NCBI GenBank assembly: GCA_907165135.1
Contig: OU015567.1
Coordinates: 7,316,001 to 7,380,000 of the forward strand
Source of the DNA: Oikopleura dioica
Lineage: Eukaryota > Animalia > Chordata
Length of the DNA: 64,000 nucleotides
Direction of reading: 5' to 3'
A program made the translations under genes and the position numbers. This document shows positions 51,566 to 59,413 of this stretch, in pieces (the stretch's first letter is position 1; every line of letters starts with the position of its first letter). The notes under the pieces were generated by a model. It was given only the letters and a program-made list of their open reading frames with translations, ran no database searches and was not told where the DNA came from.

Positions 51566-54500
51566 CTACTGGCCGTTTTGGCCGAAACGAACGGGAGCAC
51601 CAGTTGAGCCGGTCGAGTTTTGAAGCTTTTGGTAAAACGACGAGCGCCAGATTCCATCGCGAATGCGCGGTTGGAACTCTCCTTTGGGCACACCCGTGTA
51701 GAGGGGCCACTGGTTCGTGTCTTCCCGCTCTGGAGGGAGGTTCTTGTCGGGGAGAACTCCCAGAAGCGTTTTCGACCATTTCCACCTAAGAAAATAGATT
51801 TTAAATTCAGCTAGATGAGATCAAGGAGGAATGTGAGCACCCTAGAGCTAAAGAATTTCTCGAGAGATTACCATGGTCTCGATTTTCCTTTTGTGTCCGA
51901 TTCATTAAAGAGGCTTTGTTGTTGATATAGTACTGTTGCCATTCGCGTTGCGGGAAATAGTATTTCTCGAGCGCCTTGCGCGCCGCAAACTTCTCCGCCA
52001 GCTGGATCGACGGCCCGTGACCTTGAATAAAGAAAAGTAAGTTGAAACGACGTCAGATGTGCTCATAATACTAACGATCATAAATTATCAACGCTATTTT
52101 CGTAAATCATTTAATCGCCGAGTTTTACTTATTTCATTTGATCTCGTAAATCAAACGGATATTCATCAAAACCGAGCTTTTTCTTGTGGCTGCCTAAAGA
52201 AGATCGATATTTTTATATTTGTCTGGCTAGAACTTTTAATTTTTCGACCAGCTGTTAATATCAAGACATCACAAGAATTTTAACTAGATAGACAAACTCT
52301 TGAAAGTCAATCAATCTCACGAGACTACTCAATTTTGATCAACATCCTTTTGATTTACGAGATCAAATAAAATTGGCGAAACTCGGCGATGAACAAAATG
52401 ATTTACGAATAAAGATTGTTTCCGTCAAAACTTATTATTCAATAAACGGTACCTTCTCCGATTCTCTCGCCTCTGAAGTAGACTTCCACTCTGTAACGCA
52501 TCTTTGACGAGCTTGTAGAGCTAGAATTGTGTCTGTATTCTGGCAAGTCGGGAGATCCTTCCTCAGGGCGCAATGTGAGGCAACACTGTTGAAGACAGGA
52601 TTTAGGATCGTTCCAAACTTGGCTCATAATAAAGTGCTTCAATCGGGGATAGAAGCAGACTTTCATGAAAACGTCCACGGCAATTATTCCTTGATCTAAT
52701 CGAGTATTAATAAAGTCATTATGAATATAAATTTACCGATGAATAAAGCGCCAATGAAGGATTCCATCAAATCTGCGAGAATTTTTTGTTTCCAGCCCAT
52801 TTTATCTTGGTTTAGTGATTGGCGCGAAATGACAAACTTTTAAAAGTTTTCAAAAGAGTGTTAAATTAAGCATTTTTTTTCTGTCAAAATTTTATTGAAA
52901 CTAGCCTTATCGAGTCCAATTTGCTGGGCAACAAGCGCTTGGGTCGGTGCACCAACCATCGTACATCTCAATAATGTCAGATGCCCCTCATGGTGAAGTG
53001 GAAAGTGCTTGAATAGATATTCCGCGGCAAGAAAGTTGCAGATCGCGTCACCTAAAAACTCAAGCCGCTGATTGTGACCCTTTGTGATGTCATTATATTT
53101 GACGTTCTTGAGGGTGAGTGCTTTGGCGAGGAGGCGAATGTTCTTGAACTTGAGGCCGAGGAGATTCTCCAATTCTGCGCAGCGCTTGAGCACTTTTGAA
53201 GATTCAATCTTGGCTCGGTCGCCGTCCGGGAATTCTTGCTGAAGAGGATGAGCTGGGAAATTGAGCCAGATTCGTTGGAGACTTTCGTCGTCGAATAAAA
53301 CACGGGCGAGGAGGTGGCGAACGGGCTCGAGTCCGCCGTCCATGTAAATAGCACCGAGGACAGCTTCGAAGCAGTTGGCGAGGGCGTTGTTTAGATCCTC
53401 TCGTTTGGCAAGATCCTGGAGAGAATAAGGTTGGGATTTTTCGGAAGTAACAAACCTGGGAGTGGATGTAGACGAAGTAATCTTCTAGCGTCAATTTTTG
53501 CGCTAGAGCCGCGAGATGAACATTACAAACAAGGGCACATCTCAGCATTGAAAGCGCTCCTTCCCCGAGATGCGGAAACAGATGAAAGATGGAGACGGAA
53601 ACGATGAATCCTAACACAGCATCGCCGAGGAACTCCGGTCGCTCCAAATAGTTAATTGGACTTTCCTTCGGCTCGCTAGTTCCGAGCAATGCCATGACTT
53701 TTATCAACGTAACAATGCCCCTTTTCCGCTCGTACGGACGAGATGGTCCATCCTCGCCGTATTGCGGTTTCCTGATGCCGCAGTTTGTCGTGGAGTTACG
53801 CACGTGATCCGGGTTTTCGCCGTAATTGTAAACTGCTGATGGATGGGTCATCGCTCGCGTGAGCCAGGAGAGATTCTTGAATCGATAACCAAGGATTGTT
53901 TGAAGCGAGTCCAATGAGTGGATGTATCGGAAAATTGGGATAAAAACTTGATCAAAGAATTTGGAAAAAATATTTCAATTTGGAATCAAGGAAGAGAATT
54001 TGGATCCCTGCCTGATATGATGAGTTACGACGGGCAATAAAAATGCATGAGCCGCCATGTCCGGGAAAATACCGGTAAGTCGAAAGTTTTCGCAGGAGAT
54101 TTCGTTTGTAACTTCGCGCTGCATGTCGGCCATTCGGCGCATCTTCTGAAGAAGAACTTCCAAATCACGGATTTTTGACCAATGCTGTTCTTGAATACGC
54201 GGCTTGTTCGTAATTAAATGTCGGTATTTCTGATAGGTCCTGTACACTTTCTGATAAACAGGGTCGCCAGCGTAGCTCAAGTTCGCCGGACGCACGCCAA
54301 AGTGCACAATTATGGGCCAACGGTGTTCTTTGTTCGCAGCCCCGGTCATGGTTTTCTCCCGGTCGAGTTGGTCAAGGCGAATAGTAGAAGGCTTCTTGCC
54401 AGGGTTCGTGACAAGCTGACCTCGGAAGGTTTTGACAGGGTGGCTATTTTGGATTTGGGGGTTAGTTGGAATTGGATTGGATCCAATCCATTAAGGTTTG

Positions 54501-57500
54501 GATGGAATTTGGATGGCCTGGGTACCGGATTTTGTTGGGGAAAATTGGGCAATTGGGGGAAATTGGGGAATTGGATCCAATAAAAAATATCTCGCTAAAC
54601 TATGCAAAGCAGGGTCATTTTCATGATAAAAATGAACAATTTCGGATAAATAATCATTGTTTTGGCCATGTTGATCTTCTTTTCGGATTAAAACTTACTG
54701 TTTCCGTTCTTCTCAAAGTACTAAAAGCCTTGGAAAAATTGGAAATCCAATTGGATCTAATTGGAATTGGGGATTTTTGGGGAATTGGCTAATAATTGGA
54801 TTGGGTTGGATTTTGGATGGATAGTTACGACTCAAAATTTATTGGATGGAAATTGGATGGCCAGACCCCAAAATTTTGTCCAAAATAGCCACCCTGGGTT
54901 TTGATATAGTTTTCCCAGGTATTGAAATCCGATTCTTGAGAGAATTTTGAAAGATGTTATCCTTATCATTACGGACTATGTCTATAGAAATTTCTTATAA
55001 ATCAAATTTTGATACCAACAGGGTCTAATGTTCAGAATTATGATCGGCATTTGATGCGTGTTTTTTAATTCAGGTAACCCCGTAGGGTTAATCATCAGTA
55101 TGTGCCAGCCCTGAGACATAATCTCCCATTCGTTCTTGGCACGTAGTTTTTAGGTCAGTTCCATATCCGCAAGATAAATCTTCACCCAGATAGCGTCAAG
55201 TGTCCCTATCTATAATTTCATCATTCCTGACCCTATCAGGACTAAGGGAAGACGGAGTTTTCCTCCATTAGGAAATCTTATGGTCTTTCAAAACTCTTCC
55301 TAACAATCTAACGAGGTCATTTGGCTCAATCAGCGGCTTGTTACTGTCGATAAAATACTGCATAATCTGGTCCATTCCCAGCAATTCCAACTGATTGTCA
55401 AGTCCGCGTGATTCGAATCGGGGCAGGAAATAGAAAAATTTTTGGCTAAAAGATGATCCCGGCTCGATTTTGACACTAGGGTCGTTCGAGGGAGTGAGGC
55501 CTTCAATCCAATCGTAGAGTTCTAGTGTGTCTTTGAAGAAAAAGTCCGAGAATAGTTCCAGGTCGGCAAGGCAAAATGAGGTGGGGGCAGGTTCGGGAAG
55601 CAGGGTGATAGCGTGCTCATTGTGGTATCTAAAGATTGACACGGTAAGAATCAGAGGGGATGGTTTTATTCGACCTGGTGACTGGTATTGTTGGCACTTT
55701 TGACAAGTCCCGATGGGAGAAAATTGAATACCCGGCAAATCGGAATGTCTTGTTGTTGTAGCTGATTTTAGTAGTGATATGATCCTTGAAGGCAAAATTC
55801 TTGAGAGGACTGACAGTGATTCTATAGTGGAACAGCTTATCGAGGTTGTTGCTTTTGGCAGGGAGAGCGGGAGGCTGGATTTCTTGTGGATAGACGCCGT
55901 GGTTGATTCCGTGTTGCTGGTCCATTTCGCATTTGCACAAAGGGCCGTCGTTGGCCATTTTGGGCTCATTGTACCAGAGCTCGGCACACATGCGGTCCGG
56001 GTGATTCTTGATTGTTCTGATGTACTTGATCAGTTCGCCAGCTTTGTTGAGGATTTTCTTCGTGTCTCCTTGGAGCAGCGACTTTCTCTTCTTCTTTTCT
56101 GACTTGCCGAAGACGCCGGCTTTTTCCAAGTCCTTTCTGAACTCTTTGATAACTTGATAGCCTATCGTGTCTTCTTGGCCATCGGCAGCTTCTTCTAGCG
56201 CATCGTTGAGGGTATCTCCGTCGACCGTTTGGCTTTCAGTGGCAGTTTCTTCTTCTGTAGCAGCTTCAGTCTCTTCATTTCCATTTTCCTCGTTTGTTTC
56301 TAGGTCATCTTCGCATATGAGTAAATTAGTACCGTTGTCATCATCGGAATCGACATCTGAGAATTCATCTTGCTCGTTTTCAGGAGTTCCGGAGAGGATG
56401 GCCGCTCTTTTTCGTCGCAAAACCTGAAGAGAGAAAGTTCAGGGGGAAAACTAAAGCTGCATACCTTCGGAGCTTGCCAGGTTGAATCAGATTGGGCAGT
56501 GTGTCTTTGTGAAAGAGCTTGAAACTCTTCGCGGACAGGCTCAAGTGACGGCAAGCTCTCGCGCTTTTCAGTGAAATTCAGCAAGGGAGAATAGTTGTCC
56601 GTTGGTGCGGAGATAACTTTTTTATTCGCAACAGGTGCAGGAGGCGGTTTGGGAACACTTCCATGGAGGAGTTTTTTCTCGTAGTTTTCGCGATTCCTTT
56701 CTCTGTTTTCAGGTCTTGGAGAAGGGCTCTTGTTGGCACTTTCAATCTTTAAAATAAATAAAACGGAGCCCATTCCTTCGGGAACTTCCAGTTCTAGTGT
56801 CCCGATCTCTGTTCCTCGATCTACTCCTATCTCTAGTAGCATCTCCATTCATCATTCCATTGCGAGATCCAGATCTGGAATCTCTATCTCTTGAATTAGA
56901 GAAATCTCTCGAGCGTTTTCGGCTATCACTTCTCGGCTCTGGGAAGCCTAGTAAGCGTGAAACAAAGGAAAAGAAAAGTGATCAACGTACCATCGTCGAT
57001 TCGCTCGAGTTTGACTCTCACAGGAGCTCCTGAAAGTTGAGGCTCTTCTCCTGGTTCTGTTTTGACCCTAGCGGTTGGGTCGAAAGGGATGAAAGAAGAT
57101 CGGTCTTGCCACTCTTGGTCAGTGATGCGCTCGATTTTCACCCGCCCGTTAGTGCTACTTCTGCCTCTATTTTCCTGCTGGTCGAACGTTTCCTCTCGTG
57201 AGTGACCCCACTGTGGCAACTCTCGCGGTTCTCTAAATCTATCCACGCGAGCGTTGCCACTGTACTCATCACGGGAGGAGCTATTTCGCGAAGTTCTAGC
57301 GCAATTCTGAGGCTCAGAAGGGAAGCCTGGCTCTTCGAATTCGCGCTTGAGAATCGGTTTTTTAGAATTGGAATTTGTCGTGTTGGAACTGTTCGGGGGC
57401 GCTTGGAGCAGCTTGAGCGGTGGGGAGGGACTGTTGCTAGAAGAATCAGTGTTGGACACTTGAAGATTGTTGGAGGCGATGACGCAGGTGGCAATTTTTT

Positions 57501-57719
57501 TCATTGGCATATCGTGACGGCTTTTAGCAGTATAACGAACGGAAGCGTTTAGCGTGGGCAGTATTTGATTCTCACAGACTGACTGAAGAATAGTGTTGCT
57601 TTTCAAAAGAAAAAAGGAGAGCAAACCTTGGTGAAGAAAATGGTGCCATCAATGAATCCAAAATCGGCATCGAGGGCAGTGACGATCCCGACAAAAATAT
57701 CGCCACTGTCATTAGTCAT
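51566..57719 (-). CDS. DROSHA: Drosha ribonuclease III, apparently with an extra N-terminal S1-like domain
   Basis: ELWYNEP...NDGPLCKC, LFHYRITVSP, PIIVHFGVRPANLSYAGDP, two RNase III domains (ERPEFLGDAVL; NQRLEFLGDA), dsRBD (YRVEVYFRGERIGEG...GPSIQLAE). The 3' end is approximate. Confidence 0.95.
54436..54896. mobile_element. 461-bp hAT-like MITE inside a DROSHA coding exon
   Basis: 18-bp TIR CAGGGTGGCTATTTTGGA / TCCAAAATAGCCACCCTG; perfect 8-bp TSD GGTTTTGA at 54428-54435 and 54897-54904; ATTGG internal repeats. Confidence 0.95.
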
Positions 57720-58414
57720 TTCGCATTGATCTGAACTTGAGTTTTTTTTAAGAAAACAGAATACGAGGACTTGCATAAAGGAGTAGTTTATTTTGTCGTT
57801 TAAAAATTGAACCCTTTCAATATTTCAATATTTAGTAGTCATGAAACGATGGCGCGTTTTTTCTTTGGAACCAAGTTTAATTAGAAACTTTTTTAAAAAC
57901 GCTCAAAAGGCCCAAATTCTGCCCTGATTTTTGTATTTCAAACATGTTTTCGTCTTTGAAGAAGCAAAAAATGAGTTCTGTTGTAAGGAAAGTTATTTCA
58001 GGTAAATTCAAGTTCATTAGGTTTTTTATGAATAAAGACTTGCTCGTTCGGCAGTTGTTTTTTTTCTTAATTTGGGGCAGAATGAAAATAATAATGGATC
58101 ATTTTGGTCATGGCCTTTTTTCCAGTTAATTCTAGTGGAGAAGCATTGGAGACTCGTAATGGAAAAATATGATAACGGGTGGAAAATTGACGAAAACGGG
58201 AAGTAAAAAGGGTAAATTTTTGAAAACGCGGTTTTGAAATTGCCAATCGGCAAGTTACAGTAAGAAAAAACTTGTACAGTCGAGAAATAAAGCAAAAGAC
58301 TAGTACTGTAACACTTGTACTCCTACAATTGAGACGGTAGGTATGGAGTACCGAAAATAAACAGGCTGAGAAAACGCTCAATAGAACTATTTATGGGGCT
58401 AAATATGAGGGTTT

Positions 58415-59413
58415 TCAAAGCCTGCCGTTGATTCGGTTTCGTTGAAGTACACTTCTCACATCTTTTGTAAACCTCAGTGCATCTAACATGGGCAATAAAT
58501 TAAGTAAACATGTATCGTGCGGATCCTGAAAACGAAAATTAAGATCATTTATTGGAAAAACGAAGGACTTACGGAGAACCACGATTTGATGGGGACGGCA
58601 TTTTCGACATAGTGGCGATATGCGCCGGGACTATTGTCAAGGATGAAGACGGAAGATAGATCGCTATTTACTGTAGCCAGATCCTGAAGAAGATTTTTAA
58701 CTTTAGGTCTACCCGACGTTTTCGTACCTTTGTGTAGGAATGATACTCCATCCGGCAATCTTGTCGATAATATCGCCGTCTGAGTATCGTTTTGTGCGGA
58801 TCAAGCTTGTCGCAAACAGCTGAAAAAGGTTACAAATAATCATCATTAGCAAGTGAACCTGATCCATAAACTTCCATAGATGCGGTGAAGACAACCAGGT
58901 CATACCATTGAGAGACAGTTTGAAGAAAATAGTCGACATGTGGACGCTTGTAAACATAAAACGAAACGGGATGTGAGTCAATCACAACGTTCAAAATGAA
59001 GTCTGATGTTTTTGCTACAGAATATATTTTCACTTGGTTTTCAAAAATCCTCCTACTTGATCTAGCTGGACCTCCACGGCCAAGGCCATCGTGCTGCGAG
59101 TGGATGAGTGTCTCGTCAAGATCCAGCACTAGCGTTTTCCGCTTGACACCAGTTACGCTTAAGTTTCACATTAAGCAAAGCGAGAGGGGACAAGAACGTA
59201 CCGTTGAATTTCCGCAGGTTCTAGCGGTGCAAATCGATTGGGATATCTCAGCGTCGTAAACTGCTGAAACCATCTGATATTCCTGCTTGCCGTGGTGTAC
59301 AAGTACTTGATGACACCGACTATAAACATAATGGATCTGATACTGTAGACGAGTACTGTACTCATTAGTTGCAGCATCACCGTACTCCAGGACTTTAGCG
59401 ACGGGTCACCCAT
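58415..59413 (-). CDS. CTDNEP1: CTD nuclear envelope phosphatase 1 (Dullard)
   Basis: HAD motif [77 protein letters not shown]. Confidence 0.95.

Follow-up and report, generated by a model that had tools for sequence, protein, structure and literature searches.

Locus and overall gene structure

The window analysed here is a stretch of 64,000 nucleotides (nt) from the chordate Oikopleura dioica (assembly GCA_907165135.1, contig OU015567.1, positions 7,316,001 to 7,380,000), and all coordinates count from its first letter. On its minus strand lies the gene for Drosha, the enzyme that starts microRNA production, with the start codon ATG at 57719 and a first exon of 93 nt. Drosha is generally taken to have one and the same layout in all animals: an N-terminus that is disordered, proline-rich (Pro-rich) and arginine/serine-rich (RS-rich), and then the core. 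In O. dioica, we strongly favour, over two separate genes of one operon, a single gene whose product combines an S1-like domain with an RS region and the Drosha core. Such a fusion had been put forward in an initial annotation made from the sequence of this window, and it is now supported by a transcript joined in frame, by a conserved intron position, by a contig of another O. dioica lineage (L012) and by a more distant larvacean.

An S1-like domain at the N-terminus

The profile hidden Markov model of the S1-like family PF14444 matched exon 1 by itself with E=1.5e-4, and the joined exons 1 and 2 with E=3e-8 (34.0 bits, profile positions 3-54 of 58). The curated Pfam gathering cut-off for this family is 25.2 bits, so the S1-like domain predicted in the initial annotation passed this check with a significant score. 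When the same region was compared with the PDB (177,635 sequences, E<=10), the sole match was 8ez6_A, a 72-residue chain of human CCAR2 (E=0.0036). From these matches, the first ~55-60 residues are assigned to an S1-like domain of the CCAR1/CCAR2 type. No other CCAR domain was detected in exons 1-5, where the S1-like domain is the only Pfam match. Therefore, the Drosha-fused protein is best classified as sharing the S1-like module without being a member of the CCAR1/CCAR2 family.

The comparison with CCAR1 and CCAR2 (DBC1; PDB 8ez6) shows both sides of this relationship. The domains belong to the same PF14444 family, as seen by the profile and by direct sequence match, and in CCAR proteins the S1-like domain is likewise N-terminal and followed by disordered charged sequence (PMC4287135). 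In contrast to CCAR1 and CCAR2, the O. dioica protein has no SAP domain, leucine zipper, Nudix-like DBC1 domain, EF-hand or coiled-coil, and the partner of its S1-like domain is an RNase III enzyme.

The S1-like domain is followed by a low-complexity linker of ~170 residues with three psi-K-x-E motifs. These motifs (VKIE, VKTE and VKLE; residues 179-224, window 57185-57050) resemble SUMO-consensus sites in sequence, and 'VKLER' repeats are also found in the corresponding region of the larvacean contigs L005, L007 and L010.

The downstream exons encode the Drosha core

The open reading frame (ORF) of exon 5 matched the human Drosha chains 6lxd, 6v5b and 9asm with E=4e-27, and exon 6 was found by tblastn with a fish Drosha (P0017; E=8e-14). 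In the PDB, the RNase III region scored far better against human Drosha (E=5.5e-69) than against Dicer (2e-16). Two matches to PF00636 (E=7.8e-14 and 9.2e-14) mark a tandem pair of RNase III domains, and the EFLGD signature motif is present in both RNase III ORFs. The C-terminus carries a double-stranded RNA-binding domain (dsRBD; PF00035 dsrm, E=1.6e-5, 25.8 bits with a cut-off of 23). Furthermore, the orthologous locus L005 bears the Drosha family PF26050 (Helical_CED_Drosha). An RS-rich region N-terminal to the core is present in exon 3, as judged by a feature of composition only (17 R, 12 S and 8 D per 56 residues).

Compared with vertebrate DROSHA (human 5b16, 6v5b, 6lxd and 9asm), the order of central domain, RNase IIIa, RNase IIIb and dsRBD is the same, and in both an RS-rich stretch lies N-terminal to the core. 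The core also starts similarly far into the protein, at about residue 499 in O. dioica and at residue 466 in the 1337-residue chain 9asm_A. The difference lies at the N-terminus: the vertebrate protein opens with a proline-rich disordered region, whereas the O. dioica protein opens with the S1-like domain and an S/N-rich linker. From the RS stretch up to the core, the two proteins could not be aligned. There was no S1-like match in the N-terminal 716 residues of the fish Drosha P0017. A word search with the central-domain piece, confined to sequences shorter than full-length Drosha, gave larvacean exon ORFs and three partial fish Droshas, none of them with PF14444. Thus, the statement that a canonical Drosha N-terminus has no S1-like domain held for one fish Drosha, which is the sole comparison behind calling the addition lineage-specific.

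Transcript structure and the joint to Drosha

O. dioica has operons and uses spliced-leader trans-splicing. At position 57733, RNA reads ended in loose ends of 45-47 nt (five reads in X9 and four in X10), the reverse complement of which reads ..CCATTTTTGAGTCCGATTTCGATTGTCTAA, which we take to be the O. dioica spliced leader. A leader-like sequence is thus joined at an AG acceptor upstream of the ATG, as in a spliced-leader trans-spliced mRNA. Therefore, the mRNA begins at this CAG acceptor, 11 nt ahead of the ATG. The 5' untranslated region (5'UTR), ATCAATGCGAA, has the same letters in contigs L001 and L012.

Splicing of intron 1 was seen in RNA from two studies: the joint 57582/57627 is crossed by seven reads of X9, two reads of X11 and one contig of the metatranscriptome X1. 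This bears out the start codon and the 44-nt GT-AG intron of the initial annotation, and the 43-nt GT-AG intron that keeps the frame open into the RS-rich exon (intron 2) is likewise borne out, by sequence. A phase-1 GT-AG intron follows the equivalent GAT/GAC G codon in L002 and L012. Most reads of X9-X11 fall below 95% identity with the window, and the sequences of their loose ends agree exactly or nearly with L012. They were informative for the spliced leader and for intron 1 and gave nothing at introns 2-4; the 30-letter consensus of their loose ends reaches to within 8 nt of the junction at intron 3.

Contigs of two other O. dioica lineages (B and C, see below) carry a 5-nt insert, CCACG, at the donor of exon 1 (L001:8211-8602, L012:1217-1277), so that the intron would begin with CC and not with GT. 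RNA reads of lineage C have the same exon 1-exon 2 joint without added letters, despite this insert. Either the intron is an unusual non-canonical one, or the sequenced animals did not carry the insert.

The joint between the RS exon and the Drosha part was found in X1, which provided two near-identical spliced contigs, one spanning intron 1 and the other intron 3. The latter (record 1, 199 nt with five other letters) joins 56936-56776 to 56714-56677, with 161 and 38 letters on either side of the joint, and skips 61 nt. Intron 3 splits the codon AG|A of Arg286, and the RS exon runs in frame into ..RR-PENRERNRENYEKK.. of the Drosha part. The TGA at 56744-56742, which the initial annotation had considered as a possible end of the RS exon, is present but lies inside this spliced intron. 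The position of the intron was predicted differently: a putative 43-nt GG-AG intron at 56789-56747 was rejected, since the X1 contig reads through its donor (56789-56776), and the intron that is spliced is the 61-nt GA-AG intron.

In O. dioica, GA-AG introns occur often (PMC7072748), and non-canonical introns make up 11% of all introns in the Okinawa assembly (PMC8008620). Like these, intron 3 is short and of the GA..AG class (PMC7072748, PMC8008620), but unlike other non-canonical introns of this species it can be dated. In two sister lineages, the homologous intron interrupts the frame at the identical CGA AG|A and is of the GT-AG type, with 72 nt in L002 (1205-1276) and 69 nt in L012 (1987-2055). 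Because the same intron is GT-AG in both, the change of the donor from GT to GA is placed by this comparison as recent in the Okinawa lineage, to which the window belongs. In L002 and L012 the intron is a multiple of three and stop-free in frame, and its retention would add only 23-24 residues. When it is retained in the window, the frame ends at the TGA and gives a product of 296 residues. Further downstream, a GT-AG intron is likewise found at the place of intron 4 in L002 and L012. The features of the gene are collected in Table 1.

Table 1. Features of the O. dioica Drosha gene in the window
Feature	Position	Strand	Description
Spliced-leader acceptor and 5'UTR	57720..57733	-	acceptor CAG 57733-57731; 5'UTR 11 nt, 57730-57720
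Exon 1	57627..57719	-	start codon and first half of S1-like domain, residues 1-31
Intron 1	57583..57626	-	44 nt, GT-AG; spliced in RNA
Exon 2	56991..57582	-	592 nt; second half of S1-like domain to ~residue 60, then S/N/P-rich linker
Intron 2	56948..56990	-	43 nt, GT-AG, phase 1; placed from sequence
Exon 3	56776..56947	-	172 nt, RS/RD-rich, residues ~229-286; covered by X1 contig record 1
Intron 3	56715..56775	-	61 nt, non-canonical GA-AG; contains TGA 56744-56742
Exon 4	56465..56714	-	basic/Pro-rich linker (PENRERNRENYEKKLLHGSVP..WQAPK); open frame without ATG
Intron 4	56424..56464	-	41 nt, GT-AG; placed from sequence
Exon 5	55675..56423	-	acidic stretch and start of Drosha central domain, from ~residue 499
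Intron ahead of exon 6	55629..55674	-	46 nt, GT-AG
Exon 6	55290..55628	-	Drosha central domain; 3' end not fixed
MITE (see below)	~54421..54904	-	inserted in central-domain exon
Rest of Drosha core	51808..54960	-	central-domain exon with MITE, RNase IIIa, RNase IIIb, dsRBD; exon ends placed in part, stop approximate

Conservation in other lineages and larvaceans

A library-wide protein search with exon 2 returned one cluster of exon-level ORFs, from metagenome and Logan contigs that belong to another lineage; the search yielded neither a full-length assembled transcript nor an annotated protein. We compared the window with contigs L001-L004, which represent lineage B, and with L012, part of a 16.4-kb contig of the Joint Genome Institute, which represents lineage C. 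Exon 1 of lineages B and C encodes exactly the 31 residues of the window (100% identity), although its DNA has ~8 synonymous changes. Intron 2 is found at the identical phase-1 position in lineage B. Contig L012 carries, in colinear order, the upstream NIF-phosphatase gene, the S1-like exons, the RS exon, intron 3 and the whole Drosha core.

The ratio of nonsynonymous to synonymous substitution rates (dN/dS), calculated by the Nei-Gojobori method for the window and lineage B, was 0.07 for the S1-like domain (residues 1-66); the linker gave 0.37 and the RS exon 0.23. By this measure, the S1-like domain is under purifying selection.

A more distant larvacean is represented by L007 and L008, from Tara and other marine metagenomes, which are ~44% identical to the window in the linker/central-domain region. 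Here, the Drosha exon is preceded on its own strand, at a distance of ~1 kb, by S1-like exons (MDWIEGRISSTESDFGFIDGNVFFTQ..; tblastn 1e-9), and KLER- and RS-rich ORFs lie between the two. The S1-like sequence of L007 was matched by Pfam with E=8.7e-5 and 22.9 bits, below the cut-off of 25.2. In a further larvacean (P0010/L010), a single uninterrupted ORF takes in the counterpart of exon 4 together with the beginning of the central domain. Contigs L005, L006, L010, L013 and L014 are too short upstream to show S1-like exons either way, and L015, a vertebrate-like Drosha locus with several residues unlike human, entered one batch tblastn and one motif scan only. In all, the S1-like-Drosha arrangement is conserved across three lineages of O. 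dioica and in one larvacean that is more distant.

Exon 2 of lineage B contains an insert (GGGATGTAAATTCAC..GTGAATTTACATCCC; L002:839-925, also in L001, L003 and L004) that resembles a miniature inverted-repeat transposable element (MITE). The frame is kept only when this insert is removed as a GG..AG intron.

Weighing one gene against the alternatives

Several observations weigh against a single gene. No single RNA molecule was found that covers both the S1-like domain and the RNase III domains. For intron 3, the RNA support consists of one 199-nt metatranscriptome contig with a depth of ~3, and no read in the RNA examined crosses the exon 2-3 junction (intron 2). The reads of X9-X11 come from another lineage and align patchily, so that an internal spliced-leader or poly(A) site near 56742 could have gone undetected. 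Exon 4 had no detectable similarity to fish Drosha in BLASTP. A single-sequence AlphaFold model of the 72-residue N-terminus was unusable, with a mean predicted local distance difference test score (pLDDT) of 47.6. Moreover, the MITE in the central-domain exon, described below, suggests that the allele that bears it may not give a full-length Drosha protein.

If the locus held two operon genes, a 296-residue S1-like/RS protein would end at TGA 56744-56742, and Drosha would be trans-spliced and translated separately. The frame of unspliced intron 3 does end at this TGA, operons and trans-splicing are in use in this species, and the raw reads gave no coverage at 56700-56800 by which an internal spliced-leader site would have been noticed. 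However, the X1 contig splices the TGA out in frame, loose ends with a spliced leader or poly(A) did not appear near 56742-56747, and lineages B and C are stop-free in and after intron 3, so that their frame is open whether it is spliced or not. A separate Drosha would also need a start codon of its own. In the window, ~230 conserved open codons follow intron 3 without an ATG. In the spliced frame, the only methionines before residue 514 are at residues 1, 56, 58, 260 and 261, and residue 514 already lies inside the Drosha central domain. Residues 260 and 261 are replaced by other residues in lineages B and C, and the next methionine is at 514; therefore, the sequences offer no conserved start codon for a stand-alone Drosha between the S1-like domain and the core. 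The RS stretch, a canonical feature of Drosha, would moreover lie in an exon that two genes would assign to the other protein. We therefore regard two separate genes as very unlikely. The Okinawa lineage might also make both products, the S1-like-Drosha protein by splicing and the short S1-like/RS protein by retention, with intron 3 acting as a dosage switch. It is in this lineage only that the donor is a non-canonical GA and that retention leads to a stop. An unspliced RNA contig at intron 3 was not seen, at a coverage too thin for ratios, and retention elsewhere merely adds 23-24 residues, so that any switch would have to be recent. A regulated switch seems improbable to us, and a minor short S1-like/RS isoform from intron 3 retention in the Okinawa lineage is possible.

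Two further objections concern the domain and the allele rather than the number of genes. The S1-like match could be a chance resemblance within a short N-terminal peptide: the domain is short, the L007 version stays under the Pfam cut-off, and AlphaFold gave no usable structure. Against this stand the score of the window sequence, which exceeds the curated PF14444 cut-off, the lone PDB match among all sequences searched, which is the CCAR2 S1-like domain itself, and the low dN/dS together with the unchanged exon 1 protein across lineages. We consider chance resemblance extremely improbable. The other objection comes from the allele. The MITE splits the exon for the Drosha central domain, with ..WENYIK on one side and TFRGQLVTNPG on the other. 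Its inverted ends (CAGGGTGGCTATTTTGG / CCAAAATAGCCACCCTG) are perfect, and an 8-bp target-site duplication, TCAAAACC, flanks it. The exon is uninterrupted in L012, where 103 nt correspond to 710 nt of the window (55145-54435), and the obvious GT..AG pair, within the inverted ends of the MITE, leaves 20 extra bases and puts the exon out of frame. It could thus be that the species has this architecture and that the assembly contains a broken allele of the gene. Drosha is normally essential, however, and further splice pairs, canonical or not, remain beyond the obvious one; we see a broken allele as a possibility, though a doubtful one. For the species, a single gene for S1-like domain, RS region and Drosha core is the reading we retain.

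Possible function of the S1-like domain in Drosha

In the fused protein, the S1-like domain would occupy the place of the proline-rich region of vertebrate Drosha, while the RS stretch would keep its usual role in nuclear targeting. The added domain probably gives the Microprocessor an extra contact surface. The contact could be single-stranded RNA beside the hairpin of the primary microRNA, or a nuclear protein partner, as for the S1-like domain of CCAR2. For CCAR proteins, RNA binding by this domain is only predicted (PMC4287135), and the tested role of the CCAR2 domain is binding of the Shieldin complex (PMC9894118); therefore, the function is not simply transferable. Because Shieldin binding is the only tested role of the CCAR2 domain, a protein partner would, by analogy, be as likely as single-stranded RNA.

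We tentatively propose, as a speculative reading with less than even support, that larvacean Drosha recruited a CCAR-type S1-like module and that this changed how the Microprocessor finds its substrates. A gene fusion that brought in 5' exons of a gene like CCAR1 may have been the source of the module. The module could, for example, anchor the Microprocessor on nascent pre-mRNA or on complexes for splicing or trans-splicing, which, if true, would suit a genome that has operons, ~50-nt introns and an altered set of microRNAs. Some of the contacts that normally involve the proline-rich N-terminus or DGCR8 might be taken over by the module as well. The gene for DGCR8, together with which Drosha cleaves primary microRNAs, is absent from the window. 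In the literature, we found no paper that links Oikopleura with Drosha architecture, or an S1-like domain or CCAR1 with Drosha.

The N-terminus is the least understood part of Drosha. An added S1-like domain that appears to be under strong purifying selection in a group of chordates would be a natural experiment on the role of this N-terminus. It would also give the CCAR S1-like domain a rare second protein context, which may help to decide between RNA binding and protein binding. Intron 3, in turn, offers a clean and datable change of a donor from GT to GA in an essential gene.

Neighbouring sequences

Sequence similarity to L012 extends past the Drosha gene on the downstream side: in the window at 51569-51820 (minus strand), 82% identity persists beyond the likely Drosha stop codon. 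The ORF past this stop (..WPLYTGVPKGEFQPRIRDGIW..) has no Pfam match and may be the next operon gene or a further exon. Upstream, the adjoining gene on the minus strand is NIF/CTD-phosphatase-like (58415-59129; PF03031, E=3e-16), and it is syntenic in L012. Further upstream, a Gaa1 gene is found in L001 and L007.

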